Assembly (NCBI GenBank): GCA_033442325.1
Contig: JAWQFM010000027.1
Location: forward strand, 323,186-387,185
From: Salpingoeca rosetta
Lineage: Eukaryota > Protista > Choanoflagellata
Length of the DNA: 64,000 nucleotides
Direction: 5' to 3'
Shown one piece after another: positions 43,951 to 46,420 of this stretch; the stretch's first letter is position 1, and every line of letters begins with the position of its first letter. The notes beneath the pieces are model-generated. The model was not told the origin of the DNA, searched no databases, and worked only from the letters and a program-made list of their open reading frames with translations. The position numbers and the translations under genes were made by a program.

Positions 43951-46420
43951 ATGCCTCCGAAGAAGAAGGGCACTGCTGCCTCGAAGAAGAAGGCTGCTGC
44001 TGCTGCTGCTGCTGCCACGAAGAAGAGCAAGAAGGTCGAAGAAGAAGTTGTGGAGATCGTGGAGGATAAGGACGAGGAGGAGAACGCTCCCAAGAAGCCG
44101 AAGACGGTGACCAAGAAGGAGGAAGAGAATGCTGATGCTGCTGCTGATGACGACGATGACGGCGACGACGACGATGGCAGCCCTGATGTGCTGAAGCTGA
44201 AGCCGCTGTTCAAAGGGGCGCATGGCCCGTGGTATTCACTGCTGAAGGACACCATCGAGAAAGCACCGAACGCGTCCACGTTCATTGGGCCGACGCGCGA
44301 TGCGAGCGTCGTTCCTGTTCGCGAGCTCACCTTCCAGGCCCTCAAGCCAAACCCGCCAGAGAAGTGGCAGGTCGTCGTCTTTGGCCAGAACCCGTACCCA
44401 CGCGTCGAGGTACCATTGTGTGTGTGCGTGTGTGTGTGTGTGCGTGTGAGTGTGTGTGTGTGCGTGTGTGTGTGTGTGTGTGTGCGTGCGTGCGTGTGCG
44501 TGTGTGTGTGTGTGTGTGTGTGTGTGTGTGTGTGTGTGTGTGTGTGTGTGTGTGTGTGTGTGTGTGTGTGTGTTTGAGGTGCTTCCAGCCGCTGCGTGTT
44601 CTCGTCCTTGATGGGTTTTGTTTTCTCCCTCCCTTTCTTGCAAACAGTCTGCGACCGGCATTGCCATGCTGGACAACACGTTCAAAGAATGGGAGGACAA
44701 GCGCTTTGGCGTCGTCACCTCCATGCGCTGCATCATGAAGACGGCATGCATCTGGAAGGTGTGTGTGTGTATGCACATATGTATGTGTATGCGTATGTGT
44801 TTGTATGCACAATTGTGTTTGTACATCTGCAAAACTTGCCAGCGAACCACTCAATTTCCCCTTGCCCGTCCATGCTCACAAGTTCATGCACCATGCCCTT
44901 GCGCTTGCTGCCCGTGACAGTATGGCATTCCCAAGGCCACGCCCGTGGCGGAGATTCGCAAGATCTTGAAGAAGAACAAGATTGTCAATCCACATGGCTG
45001 GTTCCAGGCCATGCTCTCCCAAGGATGCCTCCTCATGAACGCAGGTCTGTGTGTGTGTGTGTGTCTGTGTGTGTGTGTGTGTGTGTGTGTGTGTGTGTGT
45101 GTGTGTGTGTGTGTGTGTGTGTGTGTGCTTGTCTCTGTGTTGTGTGTGTGTGTGTGTGTATGTGTGTGTGTGTCTGTCTCTCTGTTGTGTGTACGTGTGT
45201 GTTCGCTTCCTCTGCATCGTCAACTGCATCGTGACAGCTCGCCAAGCTGCAACACCCACCCATGTTGTCAACACCCGCATTCCAACCCCCAACCCCCAAA
45301 CATCATTGGCAGCGCTGACGGCGAGCACGGACAAGTCGCTGTCGACGAGCAAGCACACGACCTTCTGGCGACCCATCATCACCAAAGTCGTGGAGGAGAT
45401 TCTGCGGGCAAAGCAGCAGACGAAGGCTGGCGGCGTCGTGTTTGCGTGGTGGGGATCGCACGCCAAGGCATTGCGCAAGCTCGTTGTCGCCTTGCAGGAG
45501 AAATTCCCCGATGTGCCTGTGGAGCATGTGGACTACTGCAACCCGGCGGCCATGGGCGACGCATTCTGCAACTCCAATCACTTTGAGGACCTCAACACGG
45601 CCATCAAGGAGGTCGGGGGCACCCCGATCGACTGGCTGCCGCAGCAGGGCTGGGACACACAGCACGATGGCGAGCGCGCTGTGCACGTCTCACGCATGGG
45701 CCAGTTTGTCACAGACACCCTGGGTGCGTATATGTCTGTTGGGTGTTGTAATTTGTGTGTGTGTGTGTGTGTGTGTGTGTCTGCTTGTGTGTCCATGTTT
45801 GCTTTAATGTGCAACGTGCGTTGACTTTGTCTTCACATCACACCTTCATCAGCATCCTCAGTGTGTTGTACTTTGTGTGTGTGTGTGTGTTATACTTTGT
45901 GTGTGTGTGTGTGTGTGTGTTTTGTATTTGCACTTTTTGTGTGTGTTGCACAAGATGTTCTTGGAGCGGCTGAAAGATTTGCAGAATGAGGTGCAGAAGG
46001 AGCTGGAGCCTATCCGTGGCGTGTACTCTTCCCCGCTTCTCTCCATGGTGGACATTCTGTCCCACACACACACACACACACACACACACACACACACACA
46101 CACACACACACACACACACACACACACACACACACACACACACACACACACACACACAGGGCGCGGTTGTGACGTGGTGGGGCGTGTCGTCGTGCACGGT
46201 GAAGGAGGGCGTGGCGCGCGGGTTTCTTGGCGGAAAAGGGATGCTGTTCTCCATCAAGCCACGCGGCGCCGTGAGCATCAAGCAGTTCAGCGCCTTCCAG
46301 GGCGAGGATGAGTACATTGTCAACCCGGGCGCAAGGCTCAAGGTGCTCGATGTCAAGACCACCGGCAACGTCTGCAACGTCACGCTGCAAGAGCTGGAGG
46401 AGGAGCCACTCGTCACCTGA
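43951..46420 (+). CDS. Uracil-DNA-glycosylase-fold domain fused to a C-terminal R-S-E type ADP-ribosyltransferase (the ART middle part appears to be missing)
   Basis: Exons ~43951-44409, 44648-44758, 44921-45044, 45313-45723, ~45946-46060 and 46160-46420. UDG motifs VVVFGQNPYP...ATGIA, QGCLLMNAALT, VFAWWGSHA and CNPAA. ART motifs VTWWGVSSCT, SIKQFSAFQGEDEYIVNPGARLKV. Basic/acidic N-terminal extension starting MPPKKK. Confidence 0.85.

Follow-up and report, generated by a model that had tools for sequence, protein, structure and literature searches.

We analysed a window of 64,000 nucleotides of Salpingoeca rosetta DNA (contig JAWQFM010000027.1, assembly GCA_033442325.1), and all positions are given in the numbering of this window. 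Translation showed a multi-exon gene on the + strand, at 43951–46420, which joins a uracil-DNA glycosylase (UDG)-like domain, a linker helix and an ADP-ribosyltransferase (ART) domain (Table 1). The public annotation has a single gene at exactly this place, with a product of 478 amino acids (aa) and a faint ART hit (scaffold GL832989.1, assembly GCA_000188695.1). Our tblastn comparison showed that the locus is colinear, exon by exon, with full-length homologues: the UDG-like part, the linker helix and the ART follow one another in this one annotated gene, and the N-terminal half of the ART is absent. The UDG-like–ART fusion is a genuine conserved single-polypeptide architecture, and the S. rosetta locus is a member of it. 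A first-pass annotation of the same DNA had placed both domains in a single gene, and both the public gene and the conservation of the fusion in the homologues bear this out.

The UDG-like part has the family-1 UDG fold with altered motifs, as had been proposed. Exon 4 alone matched the C-terminal half of Escherichia coli UNG (phmmer against UNG structures, E-value 8e-6) and other family-1 UNGs (E ~1e-5). A profile of 17 family members matched the canonical UNG domain with a probability of 98.7% (hhalign), and a structural search with the model of a homologue, described below, gave the same fold. The Asn of GQNPY aligned on the catalytic Asp of UNG, and LLMNAALT aligned on the strand that carries Asn204, the Asn that reads uracil. 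Thus, the pocket Gln, the Tyr and the Asn204 equivalent are retained, and the catalytic Asp and His are replaced. Motif B has no His in either alignment register; the hhalign register is two residues off and sets a Tyr on the His. We read NPAA as the counterpart of HPSP because NPAA is invariant in the family and relatives have HPAA or HPSA at the same place, which agrees with the earlier statement that CNPAA replaces the HPSP loop. The protein family does not reach UNG equivalog identity: its homologues, which were scored in place of the window protein, gave 38–74 bits against NCBIfam cut-offs of 143–237. Compared with P0003, the closest full-length relative, exon 1 is 73% identical to residues 22–96 and retains 17/17 family-conserved columns, and exon 4 is 56% identical to residues 174–311.

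The last exon matched the Pfam ART profile PF01129 with 28.3 bits (cut-off 22.3), over profile positions 151–219 only. It retains 18 of its 19 conserved columns, and its Ser-Ser and Glu-Asp-Glu motifs are both family-invariant. The motifs GQNPY and GEDEY lie exactly where the first-pass annotation had put them. Its assignment to the R-S-E ARTs stands for the PF01129 match, Ser-Ser and ExE; it does not stand for the catalytic Arg, which is absent together with the half of the domain that bears it, a point that had passed unremarked.

We compared four full-length homologues with the window by tblastn and found colinear matches for all other parts of the protein. However, nothing in the 64 kb, whether between 46062 and 46157 or outside this interval, corresponded to residues 352–457 of P0003. 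The pieces of the window in the family alignment (A4; numbering of P0127, its first row) end at reference position 347 and start again at 450. This gap at 348–449 (~102 residues) removes 11 highly conserved columns, including the catalytic Arg-Gly. The lost segment holds, in full-length homologues, an LYT...N..LR helix and the catalytic (W/F/Y)RG arginine; the R-G is invariant in 17/17 aligned homologues, and no such Arg is present in the window. Because the N-terminal half of the ART with the catalytic Arg is missing, the assembled gene cannot encode an active ART. The parts that are kept retain 84/86 of the family-conserved columns (those conserved in at least 16/17 members). Two candidates for the missing part were rejected. 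An 'IRG' in exon 5 aligns to the linker 'ITG/IEG' of the homologues, and weak tblastn matches at ~62 kb, which lie antisense within a 936-aa open reading frame (ORF) on the + strand, are due to chance.

Table 1. Features of the UDG-like–ART gene of S. rosetta, in window positions.
Feature	Position	Strand	Description
N-terminal extension	43951–44184	+	Lys-rich (PPKKK, KKSKK, PKKPK), then acidic; resembles a nuclear localization signal (NLS); from translation, opens MPPKKK
Exon 1	43951–44409	+	UDG-like domain begins ~44185; ends in motif A (GQNPYPRVE); GT donor at 44410
Motif A, GQNPY	44383–44397	+	Asn replaces the catalytic Asp of UNG GQDPY
Exon 2	44648–44758	+	SATGIAMLDN..., conserved pocket strand; AG acceptor, GT donor; 12/12 conserved columns retained
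Exon 3	44921–45044	+	Ends in LLMNA; Asn codon 45038–45040 equivalent to UNG Asn204
Exon 4	45313–45723	+	C-terminal half of UDG-like fold and start of linker helix (RMGQFVTDTL)
Motif B, CNPAA ((Y)CNPAAM)	~45537–45551	+	In place of UNG HPSP(L); catalytic His and intercalating Leu both absent
Intron 4 region	45724–45942	+	(GT)n-rich; GTGCGT donor, phase 1; nearest AGs 45953–45954 and 45975–45976
Linker-helix coding stretch	45943–46062	+	VLHKMFLERLKDLQNEVQKELEPIRGVYSSPLLSMVDILS; 4/4 conserved columns retained (L, H, L, R); colinear with the uninterrupted exon of L082
(CA)48 array, perfect	46063–46158	+	Occupies the place of ~102 codons of the ART N-terminal half
Last exon	46160–46420	+	ART C-terminal half, ...VTWWGVSSCT...FSAFQGEDEYIVNPG..., TGA stop
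Ser-Ser, within VSSCT (46184–46198)	46187–46192	+	ART motif
Glu-Asp-Glu, within GEDEY (46301–46315)	46304–46312	+	ART motif (ExE)

The spliceosomal introns noted in the first-pass annotation are canonical for introns 1–3, which are GT–AG and keep the frame; the two 3' junctions, namely the acceptor of intron 4 and the gap at (CA)48, are both irregular. The in-frame stretch 'VLHKMFLERL' (from 45943) carries the family-invariant L, H, L and R, and there is no AG upstream of it. The public 478-aa product fits an acceptor at 45976 and therefore most likely skips this stretch, and the public model probably uses only 45977–46047 of the linker-helix stretch. An 8-nt micro-exon that would mend the phase at intron 4 was considered and dropped, as the homologues show the upstream in-frame 'LHK' to be ancestral coding sequence. 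Coding homology reaches the array on its left side ('...SPLLSMVDILS' against '...CLMSFKDALK' of the relative L082, which has an uninterrupted exon here), and on the right side of (CA)48 it restarts after at most two codons. A reading that continues through the array reaches the last exon shifted by one base. The 3' end of the public gene model is probably wrong or incomplete.

Some further observations concern the gene and its surroundings. (GT)n arrays of 8–37 units are present in each of introns 1–4, and the final gap is pure (CA)48 without unique intron flanks, in contrast to the other introns. The L082 homologue (1339–2689 of a contig from run SRR23272326, GC 49%) is 41–92% identical exon by exon; its intron positions differ from those of S. 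rosetta, and its exon runs on past the S. rosetta break point. The downstream neighbour, at 46695–47858, is an annotated intron-less gene of 387 aa without a Pfam match.

Full-length members of the family are about 540 aa long; in them a family-1-type UDG fold is followed by ~70 residues of helical linker and, at the C-terminus, by an R-S-E mono-ART with ExE. PF01129 was found after the UDG-like part in 7 of the 10 homologues scanned. With exon 4 as the query, 104 clusters were obtained from 1.8 billion representatives, word-indexed searches gave more than 1,100 family proteins, and a scan of species-representative genomes gave confirmed loci in at least 591 bacterial species. The best-scoring 120 proteins per list were from Micromonospora, Streptosporangium, Nonomuraea, Streptomyces, Kitasatospora, Gemmataceae or metagenomes, and their existing labels were only 'ADP-ribosyltransferase domain-containing protein' or 'uracil DNA glycosylase'. 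The first-pass annotation had pointed to similar fusions in actinobacteria and myxobacteria; we found the actinobacterial ones and saw none from myxobacteria. Identity between actinomycete genera is 81–91%. Eukaryotic members are present in Noctiluca, Diplonema, Flectonema, Paulinella, Amoebophrya and MMETSP transcriptomes, and all identified ones are protists.

Invariant residues are found in both parts of the 17 aligned homologues. The UDG part has the pocket Asn (N165), SATG, FAWWG and NPAA, and the ART part has LYT, N..LR, R-G, WW..SS and E-x-E. The residue at the catalytic-Asp position of motif A varies across the family (N, S, A or M). Extra N-terminal domains (histone-deacetylase-type PF00850, vWA, SAP, SAM) occur among P0224, P0007, P0027 and P0017, and one eukaryotic member has an N-terminal SAP domain. 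The Lys-rich tail of the S. rosetta protein, which had been described as an NLS-like MPPKKK extension, was seen in the translation, and PKK(K/R)K-type starts are present in the eukaryotic homologues P0011, P0029, P0030 and P0031 and in none of the bacterial homologues. The tail may serve nuclear targeting.

Lower-scoring UDG-like relatives, some of which still have GQDPYP, are fused to PARP-type zinc fingers (zf-PARP), PBZ, FHA, FNIP repeats, protein kinases or RNase H. Such fused distant relatives are P0074, P0076, P0096, P0100, P0072, P0080, P0095 and P0098. Judged from these domain contents, the UDG-like module is placed repeatedly in architectures of DNA damage and ADP-ribose signalling.

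An AlphaFold2 model was made of P0003; its mean predicted local distance difference test (pLDDT) score was 85.5 and its predicted template modelling (pTM) score was 0.62. The UDG half had the unconventional Nitratifractor UNG 5x3h as its best Foldseek match (E 5e-11, template modelling score 0.77), followed by classical UNGs. The ART half matched the arginine-specific Vis toxin and XopAI.

We rooted a tree of the family on GQDPYP-type relatives. The UDG–ART proteins formed one clade (support 99/99), in which the Paulinella type was the first to branch. S. rosetta fell in a five-way polytomy with P0001, one protist clade, one transcript-type clade and a single shallow bacterial clade. The bacterial clade (support 93/83) had Gemmataceae-type sequences at its base and the actinomycetes nested within it, and S. 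rosetta was not nested inside the bacteria. When S. rosetta was forced to be the sister of the bacterial clade, the topology was not rejected (approximately unbiased test, p-AU 0.40). The first-pass annotation had proposed that the gene is bacteria-derived; in view of its place outside this one shallow clade and of the many protists that carry the family, transfer may have gone in either direction. P0001 itself (546 aa, on a 146-kb ENA contig) carries a tandem pair of UDG-like domains of this family, both with CNPAA, and no ART; the single motif A seen in it is GQTPYP.

The neighbourhoods of bacterial members were analysed for the best 80 of the at least 591 bacterial loci (L001–L080), all of them from actinomycetes. 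A macrodomain gene adjoins the fusion gene in 80/80 loci and is the sole conserved neighbour. It encodes ~225 aa, lies on the opposite, divergent strand in 78/80 loci (minus strand, about 7000–7800) and was assigned to PF01661 with E ~1e-12; the neighbours are 73–100% identical among the 80 loci. A + strand ORF upstream of the bacterial genes was rejected as the neighbour by codon-position GC, which showed the minus-strand frame to be the real one. The macrodomain had no sequence match to any solved structure, including SCO6735 and DarG, and therefore it is not an orthologue of either. Its structural model had the macrodomains of Poa1/Ymx7 and DarG as best fold matches, at low confidence (pLDDT 63.6). 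The other flanks differ between genera and include an MFS transporter, a MerR/TipAS regulator, an aldo-keto reductase, PhoD, a histidine kinase, GH35 and GT2.

These results may be explained by a DNA reader that directs an ADP-ribose writer, and we give this explanation, which we favour, a probability of about one half. The UDG-like domain would excise no bases; it would read a flipped base (of uracil type, or a lesion) in DNA and would bring the ART to DNA or chromatin. The ART would write mono-ADP-ribose on a nearby protein arginine or, alternatively, on a nucleic-acid base, and the macrodomain would reverse or neutralise this mark. Overall, the system would be a base-lesion counterpart of the sensor–writer logic of PARP1.

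A reader role is reasonable because the catalytic Asp and His are replaced, and the same two substitutions make human UNG a binder of uracil-DNA that does not cleave it: the D145N/H268N protein is inactive and binds uracil-DNA as tightly as the wild type (PMC4756853). The variation of the motif-A residue beside the invariant pocket Asn and NPAA also supports this idea, as do the fusions of distant relatives of the same UDG-like type to zf-PARP, PBZ and FHA domains. As the acceptor, arginine is favoured because of the Vis-like fold and the ExE motif, which is typical of arginine-specific ARTs. A nucleic-acid acceptor is kept open because the macrodomain looks DarG/Poa1-like and base-linked ADP-ribose is present in actinomycetes (PMC12945103, PMC13036486). 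That we are dealing with a new ADP-ribosylation system, in which a disabled UNG fold reads a flipped base, an R-S-E ART marks the site (a bound protein or the nucleic acid) and a macrodomain erases the mark, is a tentative proposal with the odds against it.

Several observations weigh against the reader–writer–eraser explanation. The copy in the window is without the Arg-bearing half of the ART, and its 3' end has the two irregular junctions. Neither Pfam on the neighbouring ORFs examined nor tblastn with the bacterial macrodomain as query showed a macrodomain gene in the window; in a eukaryote one would not expect the genes to be clustered. UNG Phe158 aligns to Met (hhalign), and for this reason the pocket of the UDG-like domain may be specific for something other than uracil. 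Macrodomains do not usually remove Arg-linked ADP-ribose, and MavL-type macrodomains are reportedly exceptions. Because the pTM of the P0003 model is only 0.62, its inter-domain geometry is unreliable, and how the two domains are oriented to each other is uncertain. Each of the two domains is well known, yet our literature search brought up no study of them in natural fusion, or of the macrodomain partner.

The loss in S. rosetta could be a true one. The gene would then be truncated in the living strain and its ART dead, and the product would be a nuclear UDG-like DNA-binding protein, or the gene would be starting to decay. We hold this to be a serious possibility, slightly short of an even chance, and it is compatible with the mechanism proposed for the family. 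The public assembly and its 478-aa model are both without the missing region, and typical Sanger or 454 reads exceed the 96-bp array in length, which means that a collapse would not be the obvious outcome. The array also touches coding homology on both sides without normal intron flanks, unlike introns 1–3, and because of the anomaly at intron 4 the public model loses four linker residues that are invariant in the family. However, the last exon still keeps nearly all of its conserved columns, with Ser-Ser and Glu-x-Glu among them, and the skipped 'VLHKMFLERL' is intact in frame. Any deletion must be very recent, since a long-dead half-domain should have drifted. The high retention of conserved columns in the kept parts thus points to either an assembly collapse at the microsatellites or a very recent deletion, and we put these two at roughly even odds.

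Other explanations concern what the family does. The ART might modify a nucleic-acid base in the manner of DarT or of pierisin/ScARP, with the UDG-like domain extruding or positioning the base and a DarG-like macrodomain removing the adduct. Actinomycetes already hold several base-directed ADP-ribosylation systems (PMC12945103), and macrodomains of the DarG/TARG1 type remove thymine- and uracil-linked ADP-ribose (PMC13036486). DarG macrodomains are also among the best fold matches of the neighbour. However, that model is of low confidence and the neighbour lacks a sequence match to any solved macrodomain. Moreover, the family has ExE, as in arginine-specific ARTs, and not the QxE of pierisin-type DNA ARTs, and its best ART fold match is the arginine-specific Vis toxin; a base target is therefore unlikely in our view. 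The first-pass annotation had proposed an immune or repair module. In the immune reading, foreign DNA that contains uracil or is modified would be sensed by the UDG-like domain, which would then trigger a toxic ART; the bacterial macrodomain would be the antitoxin. An ART paired with a macrodomain does recall the DarT–DarG toxin–antitoxin, the two genes form a module of their own, with flanks that change from genus to genus, and a disabled UNG fold is a plausible detector of uracil-DNA. However, four family members had no match among the PADLOC-DB defence-system models, and 2.9 million viral contigs held no homologue. The defence islands that had been suggested around bacterial homologues did not appear, as the flanks of the 80 loci are ordinary transporters, regulators and hydrolases. 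The high identity between actinomycete genera is unlike that of fast-evolving defence genes, and the NLS-like tails or SAP domain of eukaryotic members and the relatives of the module in DNA-damage architectures do not fit this role either. We consider an antiviral function to be less probable still; in our ranking a DNA-lesion-directed writer/eraser system comes first and an antiviral sensor–effector well below it. It is very unlikely that the UDG-like domain is a still active glycosylase that uses Asn as MUG, TDG and SMUG1 do, in a bifunctional repair enzyme. The motif-A Asn and the N-P-(S/A) motif B resemble the GINPG and NPSG of MUG, and the pocket residues are strongly conserved. However, no single catalytic residue is conserved at the variable motif-A position, which also weakens the earlier idea of a glycohydrolase paired with the ART, and the scores against the NCBIfam UNG equivalogs stay far below their cut-offs.

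Known systems share single features with the family. Family-1 UNGs, including the Nitratifractor UNG (5x3g/5x3h), have the same fold, the GQxPY frame, the LLLNxxLT strand with the uracil-reading Asn, and the WG.HA and IDWL blocks; they differ in that the UDG–ART family has N, S, A or M for the Asp, NPAA for HPSP(L), and the fused ART. The engineered human UNG sensor D145N/H268N has, by motif register, the same two substitutions at the same catalytic positions (PMC4756853). However, it is a laboratory construct with shown uracil-DNA binding, whereas the binding of the natural family, with Met at Phe158, is predicted. Arginine-specific R-S-E mono-ARTs (the PF01129 ecto-ARTs; Vis, 4xzj/4xzk) resemble the homologues in Arg, Ser-x-Ser, Glu-x-Glu and the Vis-like fold, and the S. 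rosetta copy keeps Ser-Ser and Glu-Asp-Glu. In contrast to them, the UDG–ART protein is not secreted (it is cytoplasmic or nuclear) and has a UDG-like targeting domain, and the S. rosetta copy is without the Arg half.

DarT–DarG is likewise a writer with an adjacent macrodomain and a connection to DNA, and DarG is among the fold matches of the neighbour. However, DarT is of the PARP-like H-Y-E type, whereas the ART of the UDG–ART family is R-S-E and PF01129/Vis-like, not of DarT type. DarTG is an operon, whereas the UDG–ART and macrodomain genes are divergent in nearly all loci, and the macrodomain is no sequence relative of DarG or SCO6735. The ARTs of pierisin, ScARP and Scabin carry a QxE motif and are secreted toxins with NADAR partners, whereas the motif of the UDG–ART family is ExE, its partner is a macrodomain and it carries a UDG-like domain. 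The two share that pierisin, ScARP and Scabin are R-S-E-clade actinomycete ARTs on DNA bases with a dedicated reversing enzyme (PMC12945103). PARP1 with PARG or macrodomain erasers also joins a DNA-lesion-binding module to an ART and has a separate eraser, and UDG-like relatives carry zf-PARP and PBZ. This likeness is functional only, since PARP1 combines an H-Y-E PARP with zinc fingers and the family combines an R-S-E mono-ART with a base-flipping fold.

Taken together, the observation made in the first-pass annotation is partly confirmed, and its interpretation is partly supported. For the S. rosetta genome, there is a smaller but concrete practical point, namely that the assembly lacks the catalytic half of the ART. 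The family offers a large, strongly conserved pair of a writer and a macrodomain, in which the base-flipping fold of the writer has the substitutions that turn UNG into a binder, and recombinant bacterial proteins would allow a direct test of the writer/eraser idea. Work on ADP-ribosylation, of DNA itself and around it, is active (DarTG, pierisin/ScARP–NADAR, PARP-made base adducts). If the idea is true, a base-lesion counterpart of PARP1 signalling would exist in actinomycetes, planctomycetes and many protists, among them a unicellular organism closely related to animals, and it would show a way to couple base lesions to ADP-ribose signalling that needs no PARPs.

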